Below, piece after piece: positions 26,840 to 59,343 of a stretch of DNA of 59,563 nucleotides (within the stretch, counting starts at the first letter, position 1; the number at the start of each line of letters is the position of its first letter). Made by a program: the position numbers and the translations under genes. A model generated the notes under the pieces. That model ran no database searches. It saw only the letters and a list, made by a program, of their open reading frames with translations, and was not told the origin of the DNA. The stretch is from Pavona decussata (taxonomy: Eukaryota): positions 1,116,001 through 1,175,563 of the forward strand of contig CDRNST010000213.1 in assembly GCA_977016875.1 (NCBI GenBank). The letters are read 5' to 3'.

Positions 26840-27192
26840 TTAAGCATCGTGTCGAAGTCTCTCTGACTCCGGCATATTCTCCAAGGACACCAGCCCGAGT
26901 TCGTTCATTACATGCCAGTTAACTTTTGCATAACCCATATTTGTTAAACATCTCATGACTTCTCTGATTGTTGCTTGATTTGTGTTCGCCTGGTACCACT
27001 TTAAAAGAGCAACTCGGCAGCATTCTTTTCCGCGGCCCTGTTCTTCGACTTGAATAGCATCAATTACAGGTTCTGGCACCTTCGGGTTGAGATCTCTGGC
27101 CAGTGTCTTCCATAAGCTACCCTGTTGCAATTTCTCAGCAACCACACGACGAACATCATTGCTGATCAGAGGTTGGTTGATCATCTCTTGAG
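26840..27192 (-). CDS. Exon 11: Death domain and stop codon
   Basis: VAEKL...WKTLARDL...IDAIQVE...ALLKW...ATIREVMRCL, Death-domain pattern. Confidence 0.88.
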
Positions 27193-30100
27193 CTAAGGAA
27201 AAAACAAATTTACATTAGAAAACGGCTAAAATCAATTTTCAACTTCGCGATTGGTGTCAAGTTTCCAACGTATGGCTATCTTAAACAACCCGAGTGTCTG
27301 GCTTTCTAAAAGTCAGAAAACGGCCACATCGTCGTAATCTGTTAGGAATTTTCAATAGTTCTGTCCCAGAGTATTAGCTTTGACTTAGAAGAATGTAGAT
27401 CTGACTTTAAAGTAAGAACCATCAGGAACCATTCCCGAGCAGGTTCTAATTTTTTAATAAAAGTCTACAATGATGTTTAACTCTGTAGTGAGGTGACCTT
27501 TTCCATTATTGTGTAAAATAAAAAGGAAAGATTGTTTTTAATTTTAGTAGCCTCATGGTCCTGTCTTATACATTCTCAATAAATCAGTTAAACAGTTGTA
27601 AGTCTGGCCCGCCAAGGTTAGCTCTCGCTACCTGCGGGCCAGTCTCTCTTTTTTGCTAAATTTTTGAAACTTGAAACTAAACTTGAAACTTATCACTTAT
27701 TAGCTGCTGGACAGTGTTTTCCAAGAACAATGTTTGACTGCTGAGATTTAAGGAGAAAGAAGGAATCTGAACATGGTTTGTGATTTATGACGTTTTAGTA
27801 GAGCCACCGGTAGAATGAAGGTTTTCAATAATCAAAAAAAACAAGGAGAGTCCCATAAACCTGCTGTTGTCAAATATACACGTACCTTCAATAAGACGAT
27901 CTTTTATGTGCTCCAGACCTGGACCACCTTCTTGTAGCTTATCAACGATATTATCAAAGCACTTTTGCTGGTCTTGTGGTGACAGTTTTGAAAGGGCCAT
28001 TAAAAACTTCTTCTTCACGTCTGCTTCAGGACATTTCGAAGCTAAATCCAAGTGATTGTTGTAAACATCGCCTTTACCAATCTCTTGTAAGACCCCACTG
28101 CATGCTGCCAAGATGCCATATGGACCCGTTAAAGGAGCGTCGTGAAGTGTCTCGTCGTCAAAAGGCAACCCGAAGAATTCTACAGGTGTTTTCTGCGAAT
28201 GGATCATAATTAATAGTTTTTTATTATTATTTATGTGAGAACGGCCACCGCCCTCGTAATGTATTTTCTTTCCTACCTTTCTCACATCCCCATCAAAAAA
28301 GTTTCGTCCAATCGAGCGGATTGATCGAGTCAGATGCAGTGCCGCGGCGCCCATGGGCTACGATCCAAAGGCACTGATATAATAGAAGCCTTGAAGCTCC
28401 TCTTCCGCCCTTTTTTTGGCATCAGCAGGGTATCATGGGGACGAAAGTCACAATCGGTTTCAGGTAACTACTTCTAGTCGTCAAATTCAAGTGTCACACA
28501 TTCGAATCACTTATTGCCATAGCTACAGGATTCAACAATCTTCTTTCTCTCTGATCACTTTCTAGAATCACACTGATTTGCTTATCACTTGTCAGTCATA
28601 ACACCCTTTCCTAAAGGCCCGTTTAAACGGTTTCAACATTTGACCAACATAAGTTCAACAAAAGTTGGACGAATGTTGGGAAAATGTCGGATAAATGTTG
28701 AATGGAATGTTCAAACGGCTTGAACAATCAACATTTTAGAGGGCAAAGGAAATGTTGAGTCGATGATGAATGAAAGTTCAGTCGATGTGCAGTTTGAGTC
28801 GATGATGAATGAATTAAATTTGATTCACCACGCTTTCAACAAGCTTTCAACATCTTTTACACTTTGAAAAATTTTGAACGACCCGTTGTAACGCCCTCGA
28901 CATTTGGTTCAACAAAGTGTTGAACGCATGTTGAAGCAAACCTTGAAACCGTTTAAAAGGGCCTTAAGCCCACTCCAAATAAGCGTCAACTTCCCAGAAA
29001 AAAGGTTCAGTGTTGAAATTTGTTTGTTTGTTTTGAAGAGAATAAAGACAAGCGGTCACCTAGACTCGACGATTATCACTGAATTGCTCAGTGACTCGAA
29101 TTAATACTCGGTCAAATTGGATACAAGTCTACAACATCCTTACTATCTCTAAATATTTTCCACCATTGTTAAGATTTCGAGGTAGTGTCTACTGTAGGAA
29201 GAACATTGTACATTACCAAAAAAGGATTTACATGTACCCTCTATTTAGCACTATGAAACGGAATGACGGACGAAACATCATCACCAAATTTCAATAAGTT
29301 TCATTAAAACTTCACTTAATTATCAGGAATTTTCCACAGAGAAAAAAGTTATACTTCTTCAAGTTGGGTGTTAAGGTATCAGTGTCAGACATCTTCAATA
29401 TAAAGAATATACATCGCGGTGTACCACTGTTCGCTAACGATTTTCATATTCGCTAGTCATTGTATGTTAGGGACATAAGTAGTACTTTGATTGTCAAAGA
29501 GTAAAGCCACTAAAAACAACTCTGTTATTATAAATTATTGCAATTGATAACAACACTTACACCAGGGTCATTAAATGTAGGAGGTAGTGTCAAATCCAGT
29601 ATGCAAAGCATATTGTCTTCATCTCGTTCTTGTTTTTTGCAGAACCAAACTGTCAACTCTTCACCAGCCACCAGCTGAACATTGAGATTCTTCCAACAAT
29701 AGTCCTCCTGAAAGCTGAAAACATGAACAAGATCGCTGTAAAGGGCAAAGATATTCATTAATATACGAGTTTTCCCAACAGGAGTCGAATCTATAACCTT
29801 CCCATTACTAGTACGGATGTTATATCATTTATTCAGCTGGCTTAAAACATAACACCACAATTAGCTCAGGCCAAGCGATCTAATATTTCCATTCAAAAAT
29901 GTGATGGAAAAACGTGTCTCCTATAAACTACACTTTAAGATGGTTCCCCAAATATGACCCACACCAAATGTTCTCGTCAATTAATAAATGTTCAGGAGAA
30001 ACGTCTCCTACAAAGAAGAGGAATACCGTCTCAGAAGGGTTGTTCAAACTAATCTTTGTGTTGTAATTTCTGTCAAGAATTTCAGCTCAATTTTTGCTGC

Positions 30101-33100
30101 GCGCTTTAACACTAAGAACTATAATTGCTACCCTTTTGGTTCAGAGTCTATTTTTGTGACCAAACACAACATATGTTGAATTCAAAATTAATTCGTTAGG
30201 ACTGTTCCTTGAACACTCCAAACACAAGTAAAACAAGGTATACCTTCGCTTGCAACATCTAAAAAACCGGATTTGATCAACAGTTGATTTCAACAGGGTT
30301 TCAGGAAAATGGTCATGGCCTATTCTGGAACGGATGGATGCCAACAAGAATGGTTTCTAAAAAAGGTAAATATCAACAAGTTTACATGAATTTCCTCACC
30401 TGATATGAAATCCTTGCAAGCGTTCCGCTCTTACAGGCCTAACGATACCGTCTGAAAGGAACACGTAAGCTTTGTCGTTGAGACACATTGGGTCGTCTGA
30501 GCTTCCGTCGTCTAACATGATATTACCATCCTCTTTCTCATTCGCTCGTACCTTATCTCTCTTTGAGGTTGGAGAGCAATACAGCCTCAGCTTTATCGTA
30601 CAATCAAGACGAGTGTCTTTTGGACCATAAGCTGCGAAAAATGCGGCTTTTCTTACACTTTCTGTGTTGGAACCACCAACTAATTCAGCAATGGGTCTCG
30701 CACACCACTCGACCCAACTCCAAAACCTGCAAACAAAAACGTGCATTGTTAAACTCACAATGTTATGTAGCAAAACATAAAACACCACGAAGCAAAACAA
30801 TTTGCAACTAGGCTACAGCAAATGCACCATTCAAAACCAAAACGTCACAGCTTCAATAAAAGCAAATAAAATTCAGATCAGAGATGAACATAAAAATGAA
30901 GCAAAACACTTAATTAGCTTGAGGATTTTCAAGACGAAAAGGTACTCAAAAACTATTTTCTTCAGAAATTATTTTGTTTGCTTGTTTCCAGTCACTTTTC
31001 TCTTTCGTTATGGGTGGGCGGTTGAAAGAAAAACAAACAACAAATTGACTTTTAAAAAAGACAACTGTTTCGCGTTGACTAAAGCAGTAAAGCAAAGAAT
31101 TTAGTTTGACGTACCCTGAAAAGTGCCTAACACTGAATTTGATGACAGCGCCATCAAAACTTGGGGTTGTCTCGAGTTCTTCTGTTATCTCAGTCCACTC
31201 CTGTTTGTAAGCTGCAGCACTTGATGAGTCTTTGAACCAGACCCGAACACGGACCAATGACAGGTCAGGAATGTCTAATCTCTGCTGCTCTCTCAATGAC
31301 AACGGAAGATGAATACTAACAGGTTCCATGAAATCGTGCTTCTTGGGACACGTTATTCTGAGTATGGGACCAGGCAACATTTGCTTGCCTTTGAAGGCTT
31401 TTTGGGGAAACTCCTGTACCTAAAGTATACCGTAATAAATGTATAAATAATCAAGCTTATTAATCAATTAATTAATTAATTAATTAATTAGTTATATACC
31501 TAATTATAGTCGAAATGTTAGATCTTCCCATATTTCAGATAAAAACATGTTTTCTCTTTTGCATATTTTTTCGAACCATATAATTAGGGGTATCGATTGG
31601 TCTTTGCAAGCATCCGCGTGCATGCGAATGTTAGTATGCATTCTTTGTCTAACTGTTCCACATCATTGACGTGCTACAGTCGTTCAGTTCGTTTGTGGAG
31701 GCTGATATCGATGCTTTCAAATCCAACGTTAGAAAACTTTCAAGGATGATCGATAGTAATAGATTAGTTCAGAAGCGTCAAGGTGTATTAACCGATTATT
31801 TCTCGAAAAAGTAAATCGCATGAACTCTGTAGCAGTAGCGCGACGTTTATCTCTTGGAAACCTGAACATTTTGTAGTACCTAGCCTTCTCCTGTTGCTTC
31901 GCTTTCTTTTGCTTCACGTTACGTTCTGATTTATATTATTTCACTAACAAATATCGTTCCCTTTTACTCAACTTTTCTGCAATTAAATCTGATTGAAATG
32001 TACACTGTATGAACAGAAATACACAGTAAACACCATTTTTTCCCTTACTTCAGGTCATTTGTTCTCAACTTCCGATAACTCGAACATTTTTACAGTGAGG
32101 AGCAATTTCACATTCTGCGTATGACAGCTATAATCATATTATTCTTAGCAAGCTTACCTTAACAATAACTTGCAGCTCTTCCTCTTGCTCAACAGCATTT
32201 GGGGGAAAAGCGATCCTCACAAGTGGATAATCAGGCAAACACAATTCAGTGCCCTTGGACGTGACAGTGTACTCGTAAGACTTGAGGCGGCAAACTACAG
32301 CAAATGTTGAGCACTGTGTTATCTTACTTACAGCAACTGGAAGGAGGTAGTCTGGAATATCGCTGAGAGAGGTGAGGTCTTTCATTAGATCTGAAACAAA
32401 CGGCATCCGCAGTGTTACAGTTGTCATAAAATAAAAATAAGTAATTAATTATCTCTTTGATATATACTTTTACTACGCCAGATATTTTTAAAAATTGTAT
32501 GCATTTAAAAATTATTATTATTATTTATTGTTATATTGTTAACCACTTAGTTAGAGTGCTTGGTTAATTGAGTCTGAAAAGCCCGTAGCAAGTACCTAAT
32601 AAAGATTATTATTAGTAAAAATCCATTGTAAAAAAACGACTCTTGTGCGATAAAATAAACAGCACAAAAAGAAAGAACTCTTAAGAAGTTCCTAATGTTT
32701 CGCCCTTTAGGAATTCTTTGGTAGACTAATTGGGACGTTGGAACGACCTTGTACTGCATAATAACAAATCAACAAAGAAGTTTCACTCCTCTCAAATCTG
32801 TTCAGTTGCTGCATTTTAGGATTTATGTAAGAACCACCATAATGAACAATCCCCTGAGCAATACCTTTAAATGAATATCCACATTTTACGATTTCGGCCA
32901 CAGACTCAAACTTAAGAATCACGTTGCACGATAAAATAAACAGCACCAACAGCGAGTATTGCTCAGAGGCCCGTCGGAGTCAATAAATTTTGCAGCTTAC
33001 GCACTTCGCTCACAACGATATACAAAGAAAGTGTAATATTTCTTACCAGCTAGTGACCGCAAGTCAACTGTTCCAAAAATGTCAACCCACTCATTGCTGT

Positions 33101-36100
33101 TACTGTCAATCAACATTTTTACCACCACTTCATATCCCTTTACGTCTGCCGCACAATGTGAAATCACTAAGGTGACTGCTTTGTTAAACCGCAGTCCTTC
33201 AGGGCTGTCGACCGATAGCTCAATGACGTCACTGACAATGGCTTCATTCCCATGCAGTGGTGGAGAGCGTGTCTGGGGATGCCATCTCAAGACAGTCACT
33301 GTCCTGTCTTCAGAAACAGCGTCAGCTGGGAATGTTACATGCGCCGCCACTTGCTTAAGGTCCCAGTGGGTACCTTGTTTGCTCACAGTCTCCCTGAAAA
33401 GTTACAAAAAATAAATAAAAGAAAATTCAATGGTTCTGGTGTCAACTGCTAAAACTGAATGATCAACGACATCATTTGCCACAGAACAACCGTATCATAA
33501 TTATGATTGGCCTTCTACCTACAGGCTGTTAAAACATAAACCGTAAGTAGTAAAAAGGTGATGAGTTCTGCTGTGCAGGTGCAATAAATTTCTTCGTACA
33601 TTTCTTAAATTCGCTAGCGTTCAAACGTAGGATTTTATCGACAAAGTAACCACAAAGGTAAAACCGTCAATACTTGATGGTTCATTATAGCATTCCTCGT
33701 GATTTCGGAATTATCGTTAAGGCCATGAACTCAGGTACGACAATTTTAAGCAGAAAGACTGTTGAAAGTATGCTGGCTGCAGATCTCTGTGATGTTTTTC
33801 AGTAATTACTTCCACTTCCTGTCGAGCCGAAGTCAAGGGAACTACGCGGAAGATATCATTATTTTTATTAAAAAGGCAAATTAACTTTTTTTATCTATAC
33901 ATACCCAATCAATGAACAAACATCGCGTTTTTCTGTTGTAAAATGAGAAAGAATGATGTTTCTCGTTGTGTGGGTGCTGTGTGTTTACTTACGGTGGATT
34001 CCTTTAATCCACACATATCTTTGCCAAGAAAAAAACAAAAATTTTCGAAGAGAGAAGAGAAAAGTTATTTGTTCGTCAAGTTTAACATATTGTAGTTTCT
34101 AATTGAAACAGAAGTATTTACCTAAAGATCTCGTCGTTTACGCCACTGAAATCATCTCCAAATCCAGTTTCTTCCTCAGATATCACATCATCAGATCCTA
34201 TTTCAAACTCTTCCTCAGGCTGCATCTCAGTCTCGTACTCAGATGTGACTTTGATCTCTTCTTCGTCGATGTCAATCACTTCTTCTTCACTCTCACTCTC
34301 ATCTGTCGAAGTGGTCGGAAGTCATGAGACGCACTACTAGCAATGCACTATTTACACAGTAAAACTTACAGCTGTAACCATGAAAACAAGTTCAAAGTAG
34401 TACCCGGTTTGAAATATTTTTTTTTATATACAAGAAGTCAAAAGATGCCATCATATGCCACTTAATGTATACTAAATTAACAAAGGGCTGTGGCAATTGG
34501 ATAAATTTCCGTGCTATGAAATCCACAAATGTTGTGGTGACGAAATCAGAATGACATGATCTGAAATTGGAGAACACCAGTTAACGATGATAATTTTCAG
34601 AAGTATAATAATGGCAATAGCGACTGACAAAATGTTGATAGCGAAGAGAAGGGGAGAGGAGGTTGAGGGGGAGGATGCGCGCTAATGAGACCGATACTGG
34701 TAAAGGAATGAAGACATAGAGACACAATCAAAATGATAAAGACGATTATGGTGTTAATGACTATGGTGACGGCGATCATAACGATTACGAAGAGGTTTGC
34801 GATTCGATTGTTACAATAAAAAATAACTATGATGATGACTATCATCATCATCATCAACACCATCATCATGATGCAGTAATATTGATTAAGACCATGTTTA
34901 GAAAAGTGATGAAAGTGGTAAAGATAAGCGTAAAGTAGAAAATGATGATTATGACTACACGTTAACATGAAAACACTGCTGTGGACATTAAGGACGAGAG
35001 GGAACACGAGAAAGTATAATCAGAAGGATTTTGTTATTTTTGCATGTAGATTTAACAAAGAAATGTACTTATTTACCTGTTGGTCTTAACGTGGCTCCTG
35101 GCTTTGTCCCGGTTTCGTTCAAAGTCTGAAAAAATATCAAAAAACATCATTCGTCTCCATTTACTTATTCATTTATTCATCTGCTGTCCGCTTAATAGAG
35201 GGTGTCCGCTTAATATGGGGTCCGCTAATTACAGATTTGACTGTATAAATCAATTTTTATAAACTAGCTTTAGTGATAACCGGTTTCAAAATTACTTCTC
35301 GTGTAGTTAATGCTGCGTTTATCTGTTGGTTTCTCTTCACGTCTTCTTTCCTCCTTTTGTAGGTTACGTCAATTTAACACTACCCAGTTTATACCCAAAC
35401 CCAAAACAGGACGGCCCAACAGTAAGTACATTTAGCGAGGTTTCACTGTATTTATTATTTACGCTCACTAACCCGTAAGGCAGCGTCATAGATTTTCACT
35501 CGCTTAAGGTTTCCAACTAAAGACGCCAGGTCTTTGAGCTCACGGAGGAACTCCTTCATCGTGGAAGATTCCATCTCAGCGTACTCCAGTTCCCACAGTC
35601 TCTCGTTGAATCTTAAAGCTTCTTCTCCATATCGTTTGCCAAGTTCCTTTTTCTCAAGTTCATGGCAGAGATGAAGAATGCCATCAATTGTTCTCTTTCT
35701 AGTTCTCATGATCTCCTTTGTCTCCTCTGCTCCTTTACTTTCTTTCCACTGTGTGAGCCAAGTCCTCAAGAGGTTTTCTCGGAATGTAGGGATACTTTCT
35801 TTTTCGTCTAGAGCTTGATACAGTTGTTCCACTTTACTCTTCAGCGTTGCTTTTTCATTTTCTTCTTCACCAACAAAGTCAGCCCTCTGCAGGAATTTTC
35901 TGTACAGACTCAACTTCTTCTGTTCGAGCTCTGAACGTTTTTCGTTCTGATTTAACTGAGAGCAAAAGCCAATTATCATGTCCAGTAACTCACTTCTCTC
36001 TGTAAGCATTGCATTAAGTTCTTCGTTATCTGTTTCCTGATCAAACGCCTGGTAAAAATCTTCCTCCGTTCCATTTTGAAATCCTTCATAAAACCACAGT

Positions 36101-39100
36101 CTTTCTTCTTCATACTCGCCCCTTGTATCTCTGCTTTCATCCTCGTCATCAAGTAGTTCCATTATGTTATCAATGATTGTTTTGTTATATTCAGTGAAGC
36201 CAAACTGAGAGGACTCTTTCTCTTCTTTCCAGAAACGCTTACAAAACGTTAAGGCATCGCGCCTAAAAGATTTTCTCTCCTGCCGAATGTTTTCTTTCTC
36301 CTTTTTCTTACTTTGTTGCCTATCTAAAAGATCACACATATCATTCACACCCTTGATGATCAAGTTCCACACTGCACTGTGGTTGCCGGGATCGAGCAAT
36401 TCCTCCATTTCCCATGCTTTGCGAAACAGATCTAAAGCTTTCTTAAACTCTCTTAAGTTTGCCTGAATCACGCCTTGTTGAAAAATGCTTCGCACCGTAT
36501 CGGGATGATTTCCAAGCCGTTTGTTTCTTATGTTGTAAGCCTTCTCTGCTAATTCAGCAGCTTCTGCGAACTTTTTTTGACGAACATAAACATTTGCAAG
36601 ATTCCTGCAGAAGAGTGCTTCATCTTCGTACCCTGTAATTTTGAGTTCTTCTAGAAGTTTCAGTGCATCTTTGTAACATTTAACAGCCTTGTCATATTCT
36701 CCTTGATCCTCGTGCACCGTGCCAATTTGATTTATGTACACTGGCATGTCATAGTGACTCTCCGAACCCTTTGACAGTTCCTTTCGCATGTTCAGTGCTT
36801 CTGTGTAGTACTCAAGAGCTTTCTGTGGTTTGTCAAGACCATAATAGCAGTTTCCCATAGCGTTGTAGCACCTGGCAAGGTTGGTGTCAACTTTCAGCAG
36901 CTCTTTTGTAAGGTCTAAAGACGACTGCAGGCATTCTAGTGCTTTCTTGTAATCTTTGCTTTGACAATGGATTTCCCCTTCAAAGTACTTGAAAAGTCCT
37001 TGAGTTAGCTTGAAAGATTCCGTGGTTTGATCTTGAACTTTTCCCAGTGAAGAAGCTGCTTGTTGTAATACTTCAAAAGCTTTACGAGGACCGCCATCTT
37101 CTAAAACCTGCCGAGCTTCCCAGCATCGTAACTGAGCTCGGAATAGAGAACCTGCGGAGAGAAAAAAACAAGCAAACTTACCACAATGAACCATTTTTAG
37201 TGTAGCTCGTATAACGAATTTAAATGTGCCAAAAATCGTCAGAGTAACTGCCCAAAATACGCCGTAGGTGCCAAAATTACCGCAACCGAGAGTATCCCAT
37301 TTGAATATGAAATCCGATGAGGCCGAGAATAATTAAGGATTCAGGGGCACCGAACGAGAAAATAAATGAAATTGGGAGATTGAGGCGGATAATACAAACT
37401 GGGGCCTCGATAAGTTAGCAGCATCTTCCAAAAAACGAGCGCTATATTTGCTAACACTACTTCACATTTTAAACACTAGCTAATTTAGAACTAAACTTTA
37501 GCAGTGTAATGTAGATTTTTTTTTGTAGATTGTGGAATCTTGTCAATCCTTTCCCACTGAAGCTAATTAAACAGTCAACAAATGGCATGACTTCACCTCA
37601 ACACGAATAAGTCTATCTGCATATATGCCTTATTCCAGTCGTTACAAAGCTAACAGAGCTAACGGTTTATCACATGTTTTCACCTTCTCGGCAACTTATG
37701 TTCATTGGAAACATTGTGTTAAAGGAGGCAGTCAAGAACTGCAAGTAGTAAATGGGGTTACCGCACGTGGCAATTTGGGGTATTTGACTGTCAAATATTA
37801 CTTTACTATAACCGTCAAAATTCTCGCGCGCTGATTGGCTCATAGCATATGCTTCTGCTTGTAGCTACAACGAGAAAAACAGCTGGATGTAGTACAACAA
37901 ACGACTCGACCATTATTTCGCGGCGAATGAAAGTACGAACAACAACAAGAAGCGAACGGTACTGCGAAGCGCATGTGGAGCGAAAACTGACAAGTTAATC
38001 AGAAATTTGGTATATCCAAGGAAGCCTACCAACAAGTCGTTTGCAGAGTTCGTCAACGTAGTGAAGAATCATCAAAATCCAAGACCCTCTTCAATCGCCT
38101 ATCACTTGAGTTTTGAACATTATAATTATGACGTCATTTTTATGGTCTATAAGAGTATGTATAGACCAAAGAAAAATGCAGTTGATTTGTTAAATATCAC
38201 TTGACACACTAAATAGCAGATGATAAATAAATAAGCCAATTCATGTGATGATCACTTCATATAAATTTTAAAGTAAAAATTTAAAAACCAATCAAAGTTA
38301 AAAGAGAACATGTTAAGACAACGCAAAATGTATTTTCACCAACAACAAAGAATGGTGTGTTCGTCACAAGGAAAAAAATTGCCTTAATAAAAGTTCTGAC
38401 TCCCCAGTGAGTCAGTGACGGACAAGACGCTTGTTTGTGAGAGACATAGAAACACAACCCCATAGAACAATAGCTGCAAACAACATGCAGTCCAGAGTAA
38501 TGTTAAAAACGGGTGGGGGGAGGGGTAGTGCCATGCATTGTATAAAAGTGACAGGGTGATCATTGTACCTTTTAGAATTACAATACGTGGTCTGGTATCC
38601 TTAAGGGTGCTAAAATCTAAAATGACTTCCGTCAGAGGTATAGTGGTACATTTTAGGGTTTTGAGCCAAAAAATGGTGGGGGGGGGGGGGGGAATTTCAG
38701 TAAATGTCAGTCAACTGATTTGGTACCTCTTACGGAATAGAAAATTATTTGTACCACACCCACAAAACAAAATTCTGGTACCTTTTACAGGCTCTTTTCA
38801 AAATTTCAGCCCAAGCACTTTTTTATGGGTGTCCTCCCCTCCCTTGTAATAAAAGATCCACAGGTCACATGTCTCTTCATACCAGAAGATTCATGAACAG
38901 TTTGAAAACTTTACATAGCATAATAAATCTTCAAGTACAAGAACTTACATGTAAAAGAACTTATTTGTGCAACAGAGCTTACCACAACTTACTAATAGTT
39001 CAGTGGAAGAGTGTTCAACCAGTGACATGGAAGCTCATCTATGAAGGTTTGATACCCCAAAGATTTTCTATGCGGTCTGTATTATGACAAAATGTAGCAT

Positions 39101-40590
39101 TCCCTATAACCACAAATTCTCAGCCACAATGTTTACAATGAAATAATATAAATCCCAGAACCAACCACACTTTTACTATTGTGAAGTTCCACAAAATAAT
39201 TTTATCCCACTCCTCACCCTTGATGGAAGGTCCCCATTAATTCTGAGGGGGTTGGAGGCATCAAGGACAAAAAACTCCAATGGGGGAGGGGGGTGAGGTA
39301 AGGGTCTAATTTGGAATAGAAAAATTCTTCCTTTGGGCGTTGACAGCTGTGCAGTACTTAAAACATGCAAGGATAAGGGTAGGTCCAAAAGCATTGTGTA
39401 AAGTGCTGGCAAAAACTAAGGTTCCTACTTCATGATTCAAAGTAGGCGAAAAATTTCTCAAGGGGTAGGGAGTGGAAGTTCAGGATAAAACAACCTTCAG
39501 TTGTGAGGTTAAAGGGAAAGGGGGTTAAAGGTTTGAGCAGCAGATCAGAGGCATTGTGTAAAGTAGTGACTTAATCAGCATAAAAAAAAAACACTGCAGA
39601 GTTGCAACAGGTGCATTCTCGTGAATGCCTTAGTGTTAATATTGTGACCAAAATTTAACTTGCCCATATTATTAGTATAAATAGAACAAAAACTATCATT
39701 ATAACATTGGTATTCTAAAAAAGGTTAGGCATGTCTTAAACAGGCATAATTCAATTGATACATGTATTTATAGGTAATTAATTGAACCCTACTTAACATA
39801 ATTATTGTTGTATTGTTTGGGACTCTATAGGTGAGACCCATATTAAAAGTCTTCAAAAACTTCAAAACTTTACGGCACAGATTATTACCGGTGCTTCATT
39901 TTAAACATGATCAAACAATGTTCTTGGTCACCTATTGGTTGAATTTAGCTGAACAGAGACGATATCAAAAGGCCATAACGCTGTTTAAAATAATCAGTCA
40001 TCTGACGCCATGCTTACTGATACTAGTTCTCTAAGTGATTACAGATTACGTTCTTCCAGGATGTAGAAGAACTAAAGTTCAACCTGACTATTTCAAAAAT
40101 AGTTTCGCATTTACAGGTGCAAAACCTTGGAGCAATCTTCCAAATTCTCTTAAGGAAGAAAACTCCGGTGATAGGTTAAAGAGTAAACTGAAGTTATTTT
40201 CACTATTGCCATCAACTATTTGTCTGAATAGCCTGTAGTTTCTTGGCCAGTGTAAAAGTTTAACTAATCTATATACTGATTTTATGCAAACCAAATTTTA
40301 ATAATTCTTGTATTTCAAATGTTTGATAAAATACACCTTATTCCAAAATAGCTACCATTTTAACATTCTATTGTTGGTATTCAAATTAGCCCTTCTTACC
40401 TCGTTCTTAAGCTCAAAAATCAAAAGAATATTTTATCTTGAACGAGGCAAGAAGGGCTAATTTAAATGCAAACAGAAGAATATTAAAATGGCAGCCATTT
40501 TGGAATAAGATTTATGCCCTGTTGAGATAAAGATATCTACCTACCTAGTACCTACCTACCTTACCAACCTACCCACCTACAAGCTATCGC

Positions 40591-40632
<42 letters not shown>

Positions 40633-43600
40633 CAATTTAGTTGGATCTACATGGATAACTTTTTGGCTGTAAGAAATGTCTTTTTTCCATGATTTATGGT
40701 TTTTACAAAAAAACATACAGGGAGGATAAATTATGATTATACTGTAAGTCATGGAGGGGAAAATTTTCTTAACTAACAATGCACTTTGTTCACCTTTAGG
40801 AATTTGCGTCATTGTTGTACATGTACCACTTGATTTCCAAGTATTTTTGGACAATCTGGCTTAGAACATCAAACACCAAAGAGCCTGAAAGAAGTCGTTA
40901 TTGTCATGGCACAAAAAACTTAATTTAGAAATGGCAAGCTTAAGCCAATCAGGGGCAAGTGTTTTTGCAACTCGACCAATCAGGAGTGAGTAATTTTACC
41001 CTAGGTGAAAGAAAAATTAAGGAAATATGTCCTCTGTTTCGACCAATCAGCATTCAGTAATTTTACCATCCACGTTACAAATTTATAATTAGTATAGACC
41101 ACACAAGTGAATAGTACTTTTCGCGCACGCTGATTAGCTCAGAGGTGATCACCCAAGTACTATTCACCTCCACGTAGCCGAAGAGGAACAAGATGGCCTC
41201 ACGTTTCGCCATGGTTACTTAAGAGGAAATTATGTCAATAAACAATGCGGCTGTTAAAAAAAAAGACATAAATGGGAACAAAGTTTGGCTAACCAGCATT
41301 AAATGGTAAGTTGTTTAACCTTTTCAGCCTCATATTCTAAAGCATAAAATAAAAGTGCAATCCTTTGCTTACAAAAACTGCAGAGCACTAAAATTACAAT
41401 GAAAACAATGAAATTTCTAATATTTTCCAGCATGGTTTCAAGAACAAGACAAATTTCACAGAAAAATTACACTGCAGGAACTAAACAAGTGTCTCCAAAA
41501 GTTTTATTTGTCTACAAGAAAGCGAGACGGAACTTTCTACAATAAGAAATCGCTTACCATGTGGCGGGCAAGATTTTTAAATTTCATACTCTTTGTCAGT
41601 ATATTGTCAGAAATAAAATAATTTTTTTGTTCCACTAGTTATTCAGCTTGTGTGGTATGTGCTAAAAACCATTATTTACCTCAGCGTCAGCGAAAGTGAT
41701 GGATTTATTTACTTTGCCGCTTCGTGGCTTGGTAAATATCCATCACTATTCACCTCCACTTCAGTGATTGTTAATTATTTAACAGTCAGCATGTGGCACA
41801 ACATGTACATGAAATGTTTGTGTTGAAATCTTTAGTCTTATGCCCCACAAAATCACATTCAAGTAATATTTGCACCACTAAAGTCTATCATTAATGATCT
41901 TGGTAAAACAATACAAAAAGTACATTATGTAACAAACTGAATTTAGTTAAAATTTAAAAAAGCGATCTCTGGCTAAAATGATTAAAAACTACGAGCTTTC
42001 AACTGCCTGAACTGCAGTCTTTGACGGGTAAAATGAGTGATGAAAAAGCGATGAGAAAAAATTTTTTTTAACAAAAAATGTGAATTGCAAAATAATAAAA
42101 ATGTAAATAATTATAAATGTTTGTTAAAAAGAATGTTATATTGTCCAGGTAACAGACAAGAATTGTTATCTACATTAGGTGTCACTTTGGTATGCCACGC
42201 TTCTAATGTTTTCCTGGTTCTGAAGGTGTCTTTGTCAATAATTGATGCGTTTTCAAAATGACATGGTTGTTGGACCAGGCATGATTAGCAATTCTAGAAC
42301 CTTTGGCCGCAGTTTTGGTGTTCCTTAAATATTCTTTCTTTTTGGGTATTGAAAGCTCTGCCGGTTTCCCCAATGTAACATACACCACGAACAATTTTAT
42401 ACACGACATTGGTCCGCGATTCCATGGAAGATCAAAATCTTGGAGCTGGAACTGTTGTTGTAGTTTGGTAAATGGTTTGCTTACAACTGTGTCTTCATGT
42501 TTGTTGAGGATACGTGTCAAAGATTCAGTTACTTCCTTGATGTAAGGCTGAGAAGCGAAAGGCTTGTGATTCGGTTGGTTTGACTATTTTAAAAAACATT
42601 CCAACAAGTTCCTCTGGGGATACATTTGTTGTTGAGGATCGGGTTTTTTATTAGCCTGTATAATGTTTTGGATAAACTAGGTGGATAACCATTGAACTCC
42701 AGAGCTGCATGAACATAATTAAGTTCCCGCTTTTTTCCTTCGGAGGAATTGGTAGATTTAGGGCTCTGTGCAGAGGAGTTGATGCTGAGCTGGCTTTGTG
42801 TTGAATATGTCATGATGGGAATTAAAGTCTAAGTATCTGTCTGTGTGGGTGGGTTTTCTGTAAACATCAACAGCGATGACTCTATTTCTACGGGAGACCA
42901 GAGTGTCTAGGAAGGAAATCTTTTTTGTTACATTCAGTCTCGATGGTAAACGAGATGTTTGTATCAATAATTTATTGAATTTAATGTTTCATGGAGGGCT
43001 GAGACGTCGTCTTTTGTAATGATACAAAAACTAGTCTATCGTCAACATATCGTTTCCAAATTTTGGGGGGAACGGATGAATTACTGATTGCAGACTCTTT
43101 GATCTCCTCCATGCAGAGATTGGCCACAACTAGGCGGACAGGACTGCCCATCATGCAGCCATGGACTTGTTTGTAAATTCTGTCATTGAACACAAAATAG
43201 TTGTTGGACAAGGTGAATTGTAGAAGTGCGGTGATGTCATCAATGTCAAAATTTGTCCTTGAAGAAAGAGTAGCGTCTCGTTTAAGTTTCTTTTTTATGT
43301 AATCACACGCTTTATCTACAGGAAGTGAACAATGATAGGACATCAAAAGAGACCAAAACTTCATTGTCATCAATTTCGATATCAGATAATTCTTTGGAAA
43401 ACTGCAAGAAGTTAGTAACAGAGTATCCGTCACGATTTTGAAGCAGAGAAAGGATATACCTTAGGAATTTGGACGTGTTGTAAAGTGTTGAGCCAATACA
43501 GATGACGATGGGCCTCAGAGGGTTCCCTTCTTTATGGTGCTTAACAGAACCGCGAATCACTGGTGGTGCGCCATCAATTGAGTGAAGTTTGCGGTATGTT

Positions 43601-45862
43601 GGTTCATCTACAGTAATCTTTTGTTTTCTCTTTAACAAAAGAAGCAAAGCGTTCAGTTGACGTTCAATTTGGCAGAAAGGAGATGTGGAAACCACTTCAT
43701 AGAACGCTTTGCTTCTGAGTTTTTAATCATTTTAGCCAGAGATCGCTTTCTTAAATTTTAAATGTTTCATCCTGGCTACAGCCCCTCAATATTTTTACAT
43801 AAACTGAATTTAATTCAACAGGCATATTTTTTCAATTTCCAGTATTAGCAATTGACAACAACAATAGGTACTAGCTAGACTGCTTTACTGCAATCAGCTA
43901 CCAGTCCATATTAAACACACCTGTGACATAAAGCATCAGATCCTACTTACATGATATAAGTGTGTTGACATCAGGTCCTGAAATAAATTCTCACTACTAA
44001 AAATCTGATAAATTTTGGAATCTGTTGAAATTTTGCTTAAATAACAACTTTAATTGTCATCTCTCGTGATTTACATAATAGTCATACATGTATGATTACT
44101 GTTATTGTGCAGTCAGCACTCCACCCATTGATGCCGCTTTAACAACTCATATTATGGTATTAGTGGGAAAGAATATCATACCTGACTGTCCATCATCTTC
44201 ACACATGTCAGCCCAGGAATGAAACAGCTCTGTCTGTTTTGCACTGGAAAGCATAGCATTGACAAGGGATGCAATCAAGGCATTATCGTGGAATTCACCA
44301 GGTACACTGAAAAACTTGGGCAGCAGGGTGATTTCAATTGCAAACTCATAGTTTGGCCGGTCATTTGAAAACAGATTGAATGCCTTGACATAGTCAGACT
44401 CTATGAATCCAGCAATTCTTTTCATCTCTGACATGAAGTGGTCATAAAATCGTTCCTTTGCTCTGGTGTAGGATTCAGTGAATTTTGCATCGTCCTTAAT
44501 GCTGCCAGCATACTTTCTAAGGAGTGGATGAATGTCATACATAAACTCCTTCGCTTCGCGATTTACAACAAAAATGATGGCACTGGTTACTAGGCCTTCA
44601 AGTCGTGCTACAGCCTCTGGATGGCTGATGTTCAGAACTTTTGCTGCAGTAGAAGCAGTAAAGGGGCCACAAAACAGAGAAATTGAGACAGCTGCTACTT
44701 TCAGGCTGTCAGATGGCAGGGTATTGAACATTTCTTCAATCACAGATGCTTCATCTTCATCAACTCCTTCTTTTTCCAAATCAAATGCTTTTTCTTTAGC
44801 ATCCTCTGCTGATTTGGACTGCACTGGAAGAGCTGCAGCCTTCTCTTTTGAAGCCACAAGTCTTTCAAGTTCATCCACCAGATCACTGGGAGCTTTTCTA
44901 CCCTGCATCAAAATAGCTTCCACACCTTTGAGAAGCAGTGGCTTTCCTTTGCATGCGGCAAGTAGCTTCTGCTTCTGCTGAGTACTAACATCAGATGTCT
45001 CCTTAGAAAGCAGGATTTTCTCTGAAAAAGAATCTTTCAGAGGTTTCAGTTCATAATCTGACACTTGTTTTACATCCTGCAATTGAGTTCTTGATGTCAG
45101 AAGGATGCTTAAACCTTTAACTTTACTACTGTCATCTAATTGTGAAAGCTTCCCCAGAAACATCATAAAAGCTGTCTTCAAGTTCCTGCCTTCCTTCCCC
45201 TCTCCAGCAGTGAACTGTTCCACGTTGTCCAGTAGAAAGAGAACACGCTTGCCCTTGCTTTGTTCTCCAATGTGCTCATGAATTTTGTCAACAACATTGT
45301 TCAAGCTTACGTAGCCAACCGGAACAGAAAGTTCAAGGGTATTCAAGATATTAAGATATATTGTCCTCGTGTCTTTAGCCTCCCTTAAGTCGAAAACAAA
45401 AGAATTTCCTCGCCATTCTGCACAAATCTCTTTGGCAAGCGTTGTCTTTCCTACTCCAGCCGAGCCGTGTAAGTTGACAACCGATCGCTGCCCTGTTTCA
45501 AGTCTTTTCCTAATATTCTTGAAATCGTCGCTCCTTCCCTGCAATTCCTTCTCCCGATCAGCTTGAGGCGGAAGAGAGGCCTTGAAATTGTCAATAGAGT
45601 CACTGATGTCCTTTTCTTTGTTTGACTTCGTCGCCACAAACTCTTTGACAACGGTTAGGTTCGTTTCCGACACATAACGAAGCTTGCACAAAAGGTTCAA
45701 ACATGAGAGCAGATCTTGATTATCTAGCGAATCAAATTGCTCTCCAAAAATCCTTTTAGAAGACTCCACAACATCTTCCGATTCCTCTGGAGAAAACTTC
45801 AAAGATATGTGTCTGAAAAGGCGATTTAACGCAAGCGAACTCTCCACAAATGTAGACGCCAT
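26840..45862 (-). CDS. NLR-like STAND ATPase-TPR protein fused to a PIDD1-like ZU5-ZU5-UPA-Death module (~1871 aa, 11 exons)
   Basis: Exons 45862-44182, 37151-35473, 35125-35077, 34302-34122, 33393-33047, 32390-32158, 31419-31115, 30726-30400, 29714-29561, 28192-27886, 27192-26840. All have GT-AG sites and compatible phases; total 5616 nt = 1871 aa plus TAA. Confidence 0.8.
27886..28192 (-). CDS. Exon 10: helical domain, unassigned (possibly death-fold)
   Basis: Open 307-nt exon, phase 0/1, KTPVEFFGLPF...IKDRLIE. Confidence 0.72.
28612..28967. mobile_element. MITE
   Basis: AAGGCCCGTTTAAACGGTTTCAA...TTGAAACCGTTTAAAAGGGCCTT TIRs with internal TTCAACA repeats. Confidence 0.7.
29561..29714 (-). 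CDS. Exon 9: end of UPA-like domain
   Basis: FQEDYCW...LCILDLTLP; gtaagt donor. Confidence 0.75.
30400..30726 (-). CDS. Exon 8: UPA-like domain
   Basis: Phase 2/2 exon FWSW...FFAAY...LRLYC...; lies directly after HFS, as UPA does in PIDD1/UNC5/ankyrin. Confidence 0.75.
31115..31419 (-). CDS. Exon 7: ZU5 domain 2 ending in the HFS motif
   Basis: GPILRI...FMEPVSIHLP...WTEIT...FSVRHFSG. Confidence 0.88.
32158..32390 (-). CDS. Exon 6: end of ZU5-1 and start of ZU5-2
   Basis: ITQCSTFAVVCRL...VTSKGTEL...PLVRIAFPPNAV, resembling the PIDD1/ankyrin ZU5-ZU5 junction. Confidence 0.85.
33047..33393 (-). CDS. Exon 5: ZU5 domain 1
   Basis: VTFPADAV...PPLHGNEAIVSDVIEL...EGLRFNKAVTLVISHC, ZU5 pattern. 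Confidence 0.88.
34122..34302 (-). CDS. Exon 4: acidic linker
   Basis: DESESEEEVIDIDEEEIK...DDFSGVNDEIF; phase 1/2; AG|gtaaat donor. Confidence 0.78.
35077..35125 (-). CDS. Exon 3: 49-nt linker
   Basis: ttttttcag acceptor; TLNETGTKPGATLRPT; AG|gtaaat donor; bridges phase 0 to phase 1. Confidence 0.7.
35473..37151 (-). CDS. Exon 2: TPR repeats and charged helical repeats
   Basis: LARCYNAMGNCY...ALEYYTEAL; LGNHPDTVRS (kinesin-light-chain-type TPR); ccgcag acceptor in phase 1. Confidence 0.9.
39690..40240 (+). mobile_element. LINE (L2/CR1) RT C-terminal relic
   Basis: LIEPYL....VW, LQKLQ, KNSFAFTGAKPWSNLP remnants. Confidence 0.5.
40335..40512. mobile_element. Palindromic MITE
   Basis: CTTATTCCAAAAT...ATTTTGGAATAAG with inner complementary arms. 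Confidence 0.65.
40590..40632. repeat. (TCTG)n microsatellite
   Basis: Directly visible. Confidence 0.9.
41090..41780 (+). mobile_element. Crypton-like non-autonomous relic
   Basis: MASRF..., an intron (gtaagt...ttccag), then ELNKCLQKFYLSTRKRDGTFYNKKSL; imperfect inverted ends. Confidence 0.5.
41946..43800 (-). mobile_element. Degenerate Penelope-like retroelement in intron 1 of the STAND gene
   Basis: Frameshifted RT (PLRPIV, G..MGSP, WKRYVDD, VYRKPTHTDRYL) and GIY-YIG remnant. Short inverted terminal copy (43718-43760 vs 41948-41990). AAACTGAATTTA is duplicated at 41934-41945 and 43801-43812. Confidence 0.88.
44182..45862 (-). CDS. Exon 1: DED-like N-terminus, STAND (NB-ARC-like) ATPase, winged helix
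   Basis: Walker A GSAGVGKT (45466-45443), Walker B VLFLLDNVE, sensor ILLTSR, GxP-like CKGKPL, MHD-like YDIHPLLR; gtatga donor, phase 1. Confidence 0.9.
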
Positions 45863-57250: not shown

Positions 57251-57664
57251 CTGAAAAATTAGGAGTCATGAGAACAAACTAACCCACAAATATACATCGA
57301 GCCTTGTAATAAGAGGACTTAAGGACAGAAAAGAAATCTAGAATAAAACTTCCATAAAGTGAAAGAAATTATGGCAACTATTGCCAGTTGCAAGCAGAAA
57401 AACTAAAATAATTCAGTCAATAAAAGGCAATGTAGTTTGCACTGTGTTGTCACTTGTCAATCAATCCCAGCAAAAGTGTATCAACGTCCTAGGAGATATT
57501 AAATCGAACATTATGTTGAAGAATTTCGACACTACATGGTATCTACAGTGTAATACCTTGGTAAATAGAAATTAGCTACAAAAAGTAACGGGATTTCGAC
57601 CTGAACTTTTACTTTTTACTCATTCGAGAATGAAAGGAAGACGGACATGAAATTGAAGCTTTAC

Positions 57665-58892
57665 CATCAAGCATTCTCCACATTTTGTTCACAAGGCCTC
57701 TGCATTGTTCCTCCCAACTGTAACGCTTTTTATAGGATTCTCTGAGTGCCTTGGCCTCTTCAAGCCGCTTTTTTCTATCCTTGAGGCGAACATTTACAAT
57801 TGCTTCTGCCCACTCTTTAGGTTCATCCGAATCAACTATGCATGTGTCACCGAAAGGTATGTCTTGTAATGCTCGAGCAAATCCTGAATTACAACCAACA
57901 AGAATGGGCAAACCAGCTGACAAGGCTTCAAGGGCAACAAGACCAAATCCCTCTGATTTGGACGGCATGATGGAGAGATCTACTTCACACAATAAGTCCC
58001 TCATCTTCTCCCTGCTCTCTATAGACTTTCTTACAAACAACTGCTTTTTAGCGATACCACAGTTGAGTAGCTTCTCTTGAATATCTTTCTGCTTTCCATC
58101 GGGGGCACCCACAAAGATAAGATGATAACGTTTCTTTTTCAGCCAGTCATCAGCAAATGCTGCTGCAGCGATGTTGTATCCCTTCAGTTCGAAGTCCTCG
58201 TCATCAGCACGACCACACAACAACACTTTGAAAATTGAATTTTCTTTACCACGTTGCTCTAAGTCCCCAAATTCGCTTTCAAAAAGTCCTGGAGTGACTG
58301 GAAAAATATCTTTCTTGATGCGTCCTAGATACGAGGTGTAATCCTCCTCTAATCTTGGTCCAACAGGCATAACAACATCGGCAAGTTTACAGAGATCGAG
58401 TTCGTTTTGGTGTTTCTTTTCACCTTTTGCTATAGCCTGAGGATAGCTTTTGTACTTGCCAAGATCTTCCGCATTAATATGTACCACTTGAATCCATTTG
58501 CAATTGAGATTCTGGGCAGAGTCTCTTATAACTTGTCCTTGTCGACCAAGCTTCACACCATGGCCAATAATGACATCAATTCTGTGGTCTTGAGGTGGAA
58601 AGCTCAGCCAATCAAGAGTTTCCTCGTAGCCAGCGCGTGCCTTTGCGTCAACAACAGTGATGCCATAACTCTGAGCTTCTGTCTTGTCTTGACAAGCACC
58701 CTCAGGAACTAAGAGAGATACTTTCACTTCAGGATGATGTGACAGGTGAATAGCAAGTTCTCTGTTAAATGTTGACAAACCACCAGCTGACGAGCCCCAC
58801 TCGCTACCAAGGAGAGTCACTTTCAAGCTATCTCTGGTGGACGATGGGTGTTTCTGTTCGGGTCCTTTTTGCAAAGTGGAAACTTGTGAGCT
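57665..58892 (-). CDS. GT-B fold glycosyltransferase (GT4/Glycos_transf_1) exon of a 5'-incomplete gene
   Basis: EWGSSAGGLSTFNRELA N-terminal loop, FELKGY, and PSKSEGFGLVALEA (E-x7-E). ttgcag acceptor (phase 0) and G|gtaaag donor (phase 1). Confidence 0.9.
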
Positions 58893-59343
58893 CTGCAACA
58901 AAATACAACAGGCTATTACAAAAATCTTAGTTTGATTCACAGTAACTAAATATATGCCTCACACATTAAAAAGAGATTACAAGGACATGAAAGGACGACG
59001 TTACGCAGATAAATCTTATACATTTTAACCGCTACAATTGTTCATATATTACGAGTGTGGCTATTTTAAAGTTTAGCAGCTACTTTTGAAAGCCGTTTCT
59101 CAGGCTCTGTCAGTGGCAAAACCGTTCACACAGTACTGGCGAATCCACAGAAACGTTGAAAATCTGAAAACTCAGTGACATATCATTTTGTTTAAAGAGA
59201 ATACCTTTCAGAAATGGTTATTCTTGAATACCAAAACCGATTTGTACTAACGTAATGTTGTAACCTACGTTATTCCTTTTTGTCGGTGGTACACTGAATT
59301 CATGATCTTTGATATATTTCATCATATAATGTAAAATACTTAC

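Follow-up and report, generated by a model that had tools for sequence, protein, structure and literature searches.

A 59,563-nucleotide stretch of the genome of the coral Pavona decussata (assembly GCA_977016875.1, contig CDRNST010000213.1, positions 1,116,001 to 1,175,563; here called the window) contains one expressed gene on the minus strand, 45862 to 26840, which encodes a real, correctly spliced, cytosolic protein of 1871 residues. From its N-terminus the protein carries a DED-like helical bundle, a nucleoside triphosphatase (NTPase) of the STAND class, TPRs, an acidic linker, a ZU5-ZU5-UPA module, a helical spacer and a Death domain. We propose, with a probability of about 0.6, that it would act as an NLRP1- or PIDDosome-like sensor built on an Apaf-1-type switch, with a self-cleaving second ZU5 domain (ZU5-2) and a Death-domain output. 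The design is a variant of the NLRP1/PIDD kind, and is already present in public proteomes under the name "uncharacterized protein".

To our knowledge, self-cleaving ZU5-UPA sensors are known and have been studied only in vertebrates: NLRP1 and CARD8, whose mode of action is "functional degradation", and PIDD1, the protein of the PIDDosome. If the proposal is right, a conserved and expanded cnidarian family joins the cleaving joint to an Apaf-1-type switch with death folds at both ends, and the logic would be either ancient or easily re-invented. The gene would also be a concrete candidate for a link in corals between intracellular sensing and caspase activation, a link that is central to coral disease, bleaching and symbiont control. 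Work on coral caspases has proposed "PIDDosome-like" platforms and named none (PMC7586219); the gene described here is a promising candidate for a self-cleaving death-fold sensor, and a cheap one to test.

A single spliced gene of eleven exons

Positions given below are those of the window. Frames and exon joining were checked by script, domain searches were run exon by exon, and public orthologs stood in for the C-terminal half. The Pfam domains of the gene lie on two long minus-strand open reading frames (45862-44147 and 37194-35455) and on a number of shorter ones; the surrounding genome sequence is AT-rich, with a GC content of about 38%. A first-pass annotation of the window had proposed eleven exons that splice in frame. 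Rebuilt base by base, the exons join into 5616 nt, or 1871 codons plus a stop, with no internal stop codon. Introns 3 to 10, eight in all, are GT-AG by script, and introns 1 and 2 read as GT-AG from their sequence context once the exon 1/2 boundary had been shifted by 3 nt. As a small correction to the first-pass annotation, exon 2 starts at 37151 and not at the ATG of its open reading frame at 37194. The resulting gene model is as follows.

45862-44182, minus strand: exon 1, residues 1-560; start codon, DED-like bundle, NB-ARC and a helical/winged-helix part; donor CAG/GT at 44182
44181-37152, minus strand: intron 1, 7.0 kb, removed in RNA contigs
37151-35473, minus strand: exon 2, residues 561-1120; TPRs (about 36387-36978), then a helical region of about 300 residues; RNA contigs in four runs
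35125-35077, minus strand: exon 3, 49 nt; RNA joints on both sides, GT..AG ends
34302-34122, minus strand: exon 4, acidic linker
33393-33047, minus strand: exon 5, most of the first ZU5 domain (ZU5-1), aligning to ankyrin ZU5N; RNA joints
32390-32158, minus strand: exon 6, last strand of ZU5-1 (with Q-C-S) and start of ZU5-2
31419-31115, minus strand: exon 7, remainder of ZU5-2, ending in H1489-F1490-S1491 (31125-31117)
30726-30400, minus strand: exon 8, first part of UPA; collinear with homologs, and the family profile aligns through ankyrin UPA
29714-29561, minus strand: exon 9, last part of UPA; acceptor 29714 matches homologs gap-free
28192-27886, minus strand: exon 10, conserved helical spacer (KTPVEFFG...)
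27192-26840, minus strand: exon 11, Death domain (about 26927-27142) and stop codon

In translated alignment the eleven exons are collinear with public proteins from 45862 to 26858 at 54-58% identity, and the joins 7/8, 8/9, 9/10 and 10/11 are gap-free against homologs. An alternative in-frame acceptor at 29735 would yield a protein of 1878 residues; the homolog alignment favours 29714.

Contigs of four public runs (X1, X5, X6 and X9) were placed on 31950-37400. In X1, X6 and X9, which represent three studies, the exons are covered and the introns are empty, and these runs are therefore taken as RNA. Each of the junctions that the first-pass annotation had singled out for checking (35473, 35125, 34302 and 33393) is found in RNA contigs from these studies. 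The disputed joint of exons 2 and 3 (35125/35473, with GT..AG ends) is present in X1, X6 and X9. The 34302/35077 joint is present in X1 and X6, and X9 carries a matching loose end at the start of exon 4. The 33392/34121 joint in X1 is equivalent to exon ends at 33393/34122, as the cut can be placed one base further, and a 32391/33049-33052 joint is found in X1 and X6, including one 618-nt contig across exons 5 and 6. Contig ends that hang loose at 37154 carry the final codons of exon 1 (X1, X6, X9), and those at 32155 carry the opening 30 bases of exon 7. The chain of exons 1>2>3>4>5>6>7 is thus seen in RNA of three studies. Contigs of X1 are identical to the window, with no differences, so they are transcripts of this gene and not of a paralog. 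Some joints in the RNA have variant letters, which are probably alleles or paralogs that are spliced alike. The junctions from exon 7 to exon 11 lie outside the RNA-covered stretch, and their support is the gap-free collinearity with public full-length homologs.

The first-pass annotation had also remarked that the receptor half has no terminal exon unless the donor at 35472 is read through, and this is what the sequence gives. Past the exon-2 donor (GT at 35472-35471), in-frame TAA TAA codons stand at 35457-35452, six codons downstream of the donor, and are overlapped by an AATAAA hexamer at 35456-35451; stops and hexamer together lie 16-22 nt past the donor. They make a receptor-only isoform, produced by intronic polyadenylation, a possible candidate product of the gene. 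It is improbable that such a product is the main one, i.e., that the locus chiefly makes a short DED-like/NB-ARC/TPR receptor ending at the TAA at 35457-35455 through the AATAAA at 35456-35451, that the ZU5-Death half is mostly expressed from a promoter of its own, and that the fused mRNA is a minor read-through. The closeness of stop and poly(A) hexamer to the donor (within 22 nt) would suit this arrangement, as would the contigs of X5 over 35378-35555 and a public Montipora protein (P0185) that has NB-ARC and TPR and no Pfam ZU5 or Death match. X5, the only run with contigs there, is however a metatranscriptome whose contigs also cover other introns, and unspliced RNA or DNA explains its intron coverage. 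Moreover, the 35473>35125 splice is found in three studies, depth is 0-1 in X1, X6 and X9 in the bin just past the donor (35226-35407), a separate start site for the ZU5 half was not seen, and the fusion is kept down to 27% identity in Nematostella and a jellyfish. The short Montipora model P0003 is a truncated one that stops after the acidic linker.

Two other elements lie within the introns. At 42203-43695 on the minus strand, intron 1 contains a decayed retroelement, seen as overlapping open reading frames with a YVDD-type reverse-transcriptase motif in translation; these frames gave no Pfam match at E<=1. Intron 2 holds a short repeated element at 35181-35226 (the unit attaagcggac, twice) which reaches a depth of 326 in X5 and 257 in X6, with numerous loose ends in every RNA run. 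Probably this is a repeat that is dispersed and transcribed but lies outside the mRNA of the gene.

The gene belongs to a tandem array (below) with divergent and partial copies, and it could be asked whether it is itself a decaying or chimeric member of a fast-turnover array, without a functional full-length protein. The partial copies and the retroelement in intron 1 would fit with that. Decay is highly improbable for a gene in which 1871 codons are open, the introns are GT-AG, the transcript is made and correctly spliced, and every domain is conserved.

Domains of the sensor and effector halves

The domain order of the first-pass annotation (DED-like, STAND, TPR, acidic linker, ZU5-ZU5-UPA, Death) was recovered by Pfam, by a family profile and by fold models. 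The features of the N-terminal half that lie in exon 1 are the following.

45575-45856, minus strand: DED-like helical bundle, residues about 3-96, from an AlphaFold2 model and Foldseek
44903-45526, minus strand: NB-ARC NTPase core, Pfam match to residues 113-320
45443-45466, minus strand: Walker A, GSAGVGKT, residues 133-140
45224-45241, minus strand: Walker B, LFLLDN, residues 208-213
45086-45103, minus strand: LLTSRT motif
44930-44947, minus strand: GLPL-like motif, GKPLLL, residues 306-311
44519-44536, minus strand: MHD-like motif, DIHPLL, residues 443-448; equivalence to MHD is by position only

The AlphaFold2 model of the N-terminus has a predicted local distance difference test score (pLDDT) of 79, and DSSP assigns five helices to it. 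When the PDB was searched with Foldseek, ranks 1-34 and most of those down to 50 were DEDs, namely those of caspase-8, cFLIP, FADD, PEA-15 and viral FLIPs; template modelling (TM) scores were 0.6-0.8 (up to 0.81) with a root-mean-square deviation of about 2 A, but E-values were only 0.14 and above. Among 22 aligned relatives, 8 matched Pfam DED weakly (best E=7e-4, below the gathering score), and DED was the only family matched by several members of the alignment. "DED-like" is a fair name for this fold.

Exon 1 matches Pfam NB-ARC with 34.7 bits against a cut-off of 23.5 (E=1.5e-8). It also passes Pfam NACHT with 31.9 bits against 26.7, and the call between the two subfamilies is not sharp. 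Walker A, Walker B, a GLPL-like motif and the His of an MHD-like motif are defining motifs of NB-ARC, and the NTPase appears to fit NB-ARC (Apaf-1/CED-4-like) better than the NACHT of NLRs. The match of exon 2 to Pfam TPR_12 is strong (E=2.7e-34); the approximately 300 helical residues that follow the TPRs gave no Pfam match. No exon had a Pfam match to LRR, and TPRs occupy the place of the LRR of canonical NLRs and PIDD1.

The linker in exon 4 has 26 Asp or Glu residues and 1 Lys or Arg among 59. Beyond it, Pfam recognizes ZU5 on exon 5 (E=3.3e-7), a second ZU5 weakly, and Death on exon 11 (E=7.5e-7, 29.6 bits against a cut-off of 22.6); exons 7 to 10, searched individually, gave no credible Pfam match. 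A family profile of the C-terminal half aligned to the ankyrin-B ZU5N-ZU5C-UPA-DD sequence (4d8o) with E=3.7e-34 over ZU5, ZU5 and UPA, while Death was matched separately, and it also matched the death domains of FADD (4e-7), ankyrin and RIPK1. UPA was recognized only by this comparison of the family profile with PDB sequences. The ZU5-2/UPA region of the nearest public ortholog, from Montipora, was modelled with a pLDDT of 81, and in the fold search the model matched ankyrin-B (1e-16), UNC5b (1e-10), the FIIND of rat NLRP1 (4e-5), CARD8 (1e-4) and human NLRP1 (9e-4). The family hidden Markov model profile did not reach the ZU5 regions of NLRP1, CARD8 or PIDD; NLRP1 and CARD8 were reached by the fold search only. 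Exon 10 encodes about 100 helical residues between UPA and Death that are conserved across corals and had no credible Pfam match. Matches of this spacer in the ESM Atlas were low-recognition bacterial HEAT-like clusters and were treated as noise. Neither ANK repeats nor PYD, LRR, FIIND or CARD domains were matched by Pfam in the exons.

A candidate self-cleavage site and likeness to NLRP1 and PIDD1

Exon 7 ends in V-R-H-F-S-G, and the H1489, F1490 and S1491 codons (31125-31117) fall at the boundary of ZU5-2 and UPA. Across 15 relatives from corals, Nematostella and a jellyfish, the Ser of this motif never varies and at least 90% retain the Phe. Ankyrin shows V-S-A here in the profile alignment, and we know of no report of ankyrin self-cleavage. 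F-S sits, in the model of the Montipora ortholog, in the turn before the last strand of ZU5-2, which is the self-cleavage position described for CARD8, NLRP1 and PIDD (PMC3210808). UNC5b has Leu where CARD8 has an essential Phe (PMC3210808). Because F-S is conserved, ankyrin differs and the location in the turn matches, the coral motif agrees with a self-cleavage site both in sequence and in position, and we infer from it a putative cut between F1490 and S1491. Eight copies of exon 7 in the genome, including that of the gene itself, read F-S in five cases, F-C in one and F-F in two, and the exon boundary after F-S-G is conserved among them.

What is known of STAND NTPases, PIDD1 and NLRP1/CARD8 allows an outline of how the protein might work. 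The NB-ARC/TPR half would be a nucleotide-dependent switch, made to oligomerize by a ligand or a disturbance that reaches the repeats. ZU5-2 would cut its own chain between F1490 and S1491, as PIDD1, NLRP1 and CARD8 do, and the resulting fragment of 381 residues (UPA, spacer and Death) would remain docked non-covalently on the sensor. Activation, or loss of the N-terminal part, would then free or cluster the Death domain, which could recruit CRADD- or FADD-like adaptors and, through them, caspases. The DED-like end might provide a second homotypic contact, for example with tandem-DED caspase-8-like enzymes. Such enzymes, as well as CARD caspases and CRADD-like proteins, are present in corals (PMC7586219). 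That the two death folds feed two independent outputs, as the first-pass annotation suggested, would be pure inference.

Several observations weigh against this mechanism. The first 110 residues of the window's own protein gave no Pfam DED match at E<=1, and the E-values of the fold search for the DED-like N-terminus are weak. The RNA evidence consists of assembled contigs and not of single full-length molecules, and the ZU5-2/UPA structure was modelled on the Montipora ortholog instead of the joined sequence of the window. By sequence, the ZU5-ZU5-UPA-DD part is nearest to ankyrins. The His of the motif alternates with Arg in several relatives. ZU5-1 ends in Q-C-S, with neither His nor Phe, which makes a second cut of the PIDD type unlikely. 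Finally, F-F stands in two identical paralogs and L-S in one Montipora paralog; cleavage, if real, is therefore not universal in the family.

In the main rival account of the same protein, the chain stays uncut and ZU5-ZU5-UPA-Death forms a closed supramodule that masks the Death domain in the style of UNC5b or ankyrin, to be opened by a conformational change in NB-ARC/TPR. The account is in keeping with the nearness of the module to ankyrins by sequence and then to UNC5b in the fold search, with the family members that lack the Ser or the Phe, and with a ZU5-1 devoid of a cleavage motif. We nevertheless consider it rather unlikely. The F-S dipeptide has been retained from Nematostella to corals, with the Ser invariant in 15 sequences, whereas the two proteins on which a non-cleaving module would be patterned differ at the motif, ankyrin with its V-S-A and UNC5b with Leu in place of the essential Phe of CARD8 (PMC3210808). 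A self-cleaving ZU5-2 on an Apaf-1-type switch is the reading that we prefer.

Among known systems, NLRP1 is a closer functional parallel than PIDD1, the one comparison drawn in the first-pass annotation. Human NLRP1, whose layout we take to be PYD-NACHT-LRR-ZU5/UPA-CARD, parallels the coral gene in its design. Both have an N-terminal death fold, a STAND NTPase, a repeat sensor, ZU5-UPA with an F/S motif and a C-terminal death fold; the coral protein has DED-like for PYD, NB-ARC for NACHT, TPR for LRR and Death for CARD, two ZU5 domains and not one, and in addition the acidic linker and the helical spacer. CARD8 is a sensor-less relative of NLRP1, and the FIIND of each matches the ZU5-2/UPA model of the coral family by fold. 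The coral protein is an analogue of NLRP1 and not an ortholog: since it is without PYD, LRR and CARD, has an NB-ARC-type NTPase and carries two ZU5 domains, it is a member of neither the NLRP1 nor the PIDD1 family.

Cleavage of PIDD at S588 yields PIDD-CC, the fragment that activates caspase-2. PIDD1 (LRR-ZU5-ZU5-UPA-DD) has the same order of C-terminal domains as the coral protein and H-F-S at the ZU5-2/UPA boundary, while its LRR is replaced in the coral protein by the N-terminal 1120 residues of DED-like bundle and NB-ARC/TPR STAND. Of the two cut sites of PIDD, S446 and S588, the latter is that of ZU5-2 (PMC3210808), and NLRP1 and PIDD share the arrangement of repeats, ZU5 and death fold (PMC3210808). 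The first H-F-S of PIDD (S446) corresponds to Q-C-S after ZU5-1 in the coral protein. The PIDD-type self-cleavage of the first-pass annotation is accordingly retained for one of the two PIDD motifs, a plausible H-F-S at ZU5-2/UPA. The best matches of the C-terminal half by sequence and fold, ankyrin (4d8o) and the UNC5b supramodule (3g5b), differ in other respects: the coral protein is without the ANK repeats of ankyrin and the netrin-receptor ectodomain of UNC5b, and has H-F-S against the V-S-A of ankyrin.

Relatives, tandem array and a neighbouring glycosyltransferase exon

An exhaustive HMMER search with exon 1 found 191 relatives, the long ones of which carry the same domain composition. 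Proteins of 1716-1924 residues from Montipora capricornis and M. foliosa in RefSeq are 60% identical over exon 1. Identity is 27% for the Nematostella vectensis proteins EDO34422/A7SPE5 (1469 residues) and XP_048590327 (1542 residues), which have NB-ARC, TPR, ZU5 and Death, and a 1513-residue protein of the scyphozoan Sanderia malayensis has NB-ARC, TPR and ZU5. Proteins of Acropora digitifera, A. palmata and A. millepora and one of Oculina patagonica came in addition from a word-index search in which the query was the C-terminal half of the Montipora protein. An A. cervicornis relative is annotated as "Nephrocystin-3", and a Stylophora pistillata relative with TPR, ZU5 and Death as "p53-induced protein with a death domain". 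In sum, predicted proteins of Acropora, Montipora and Nematostella share the whole architecture in collinear order, and those of Stylophora, Oculina and a scyphozoan jellyfish share parts of it; the family is thus found across Cnidaria.

The search across cnidarian proteomes that the first-pass annotation had called for thus found the same composition in Acropora, Montipora and Nematostella, and its suggestion that no protein of this architecture had been described was overstated. NLRP1 follows the same design logic, full-length homologs from these three genera are in RefSeq and UniProt, surveys tally NACHT with ZU5, Death and NB-ARC (PMC8260672, PMC12909245), and DED-NB-ARC-TPR was known in 2007 (PMC2246300). 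In that 2007 study, Zmasek et al. described Apaf-1/CED-4 homologs of DED-NB-ARC-TPR type in Nematostella and amphioxus, with DED or DD N-termini (PMC2246300). The Nematostella proteins have the same receptor half as the coral gene; over exon 1, A7SPE5 shows 27% identity, and the figure for an amphioxus DED-NB-ARC-TPR protein is 28%. ZU5 does not occur in the text of PMC2246300 (0 occurrences), and the ZU5-ZU5-UPA-Death half sets the coral family apart. These surveys, which cover the NLRs of cnidarians and sponges, report ZU5, Death and NB-ARC in combination with NACHT (PMC8260672, PMC12909245), and one calls NACHT-ZU5 architectures "still with unknown function" (PMC12909245). Since exon 1 also passes the NACHT threshold, the coral family is probably included in these tallies. 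The tallies record domain co-occurrence only, and give no description of the architecture, no cleavage motif and no parallel to NLRP1 or PIDD. A full-text literature search, with the Acropora NLR repertoire of Hamada et al. 2013 outside its reach, found no paper on the full architecture, the conserved H-F-S or the NLRP1 parallel in cnidarians, and no functional study.

At least fourteen relatives of exon 1 are present in this 602-Mb genome. A 180-kb span of the contig (C213) contains seven NB-ARC exons on one strand, that of the gene itself among them, and most are followed at gene-scale distances by ZU5 and Death exons.

C213:1142843-1341048, one strand: tandem array, NB-ARC exon identities 100, 89, 87, 70, 69, 67 and 35%

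Because relatives share the composition and tandem copies carry ZU5 and Death exons, the fusion is old and recurrent and belongs to a tandem family that is expanding; the family also shuffles its C-terminal part. Further copies are found on contigs C106 (an identical duplicate pair), C169 and C121.

Upstream of the gene, at 57609-58940 on the minus strand, a 443-codon open reading frame matches Pfam GT4-conflict, a family 4 glycosyltransferase in conflict systems, with E=3.6e-79. A splice acceptor (ttgttgcag) at about 58893 makes it look like an internal or terminal exon. The genome has at least 96 copies of GT4-conflict, and GT4 is fused to ZU5-ZU5-UPA in Acropora palmata P0173, where it is N-terminal, and Porites lobata P0182, where it is C-terminal. 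In the next paralog upstream (C213:1173612-1213382), the NB-ARC exon is 89% identical and is accompanied by a TPR exon and by a ZU5-1 exon that has diverged. Exons for ZU5-2, UPA or Death were looked for up to the GT4-conflict exon of the window and not found, in a stretch that contains 210 N. From its predicted exons, this paralog may be a sensor with a glycosyltransferase at its end in place of a Death domain. The GT4 exon at 57609-58940 could be part of the upstream paralog, an alternative first exon of the gene described here, or a separate gene.

In the upstream paralog a GT4 exon apparently takes the place of the UPA-Death exons, and other corals fuse GT4 to ZU5-ZU5-UPA. On these grounds one may suggest, tentatively and with more doubt than confidence, that cnidarians arrived independently at an NLRP1-like sensor of the "cut, hold and release" kind, with an Apaf-1-type NB-ARC/TPR switch as its base, and that the self-cleaving ZU5-UPA joint serves there as a general cassette for effector release. 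If so, one sensor could launch either a death-fold signal or an enzymatic effector.

Individual public models depart from the common layout. The Montipora protein P0154 has, by eye, a death-domain-like stretch between UPA and the spacer and is without a terminal Death domain. P0180 and P0181 run from TPR towards a Death-type C-terminus without a Pfam ZU5 match. The A. palmata model P0160 contains two copies of ZU5-ZU5-UPA and is possibly a merged gene model.

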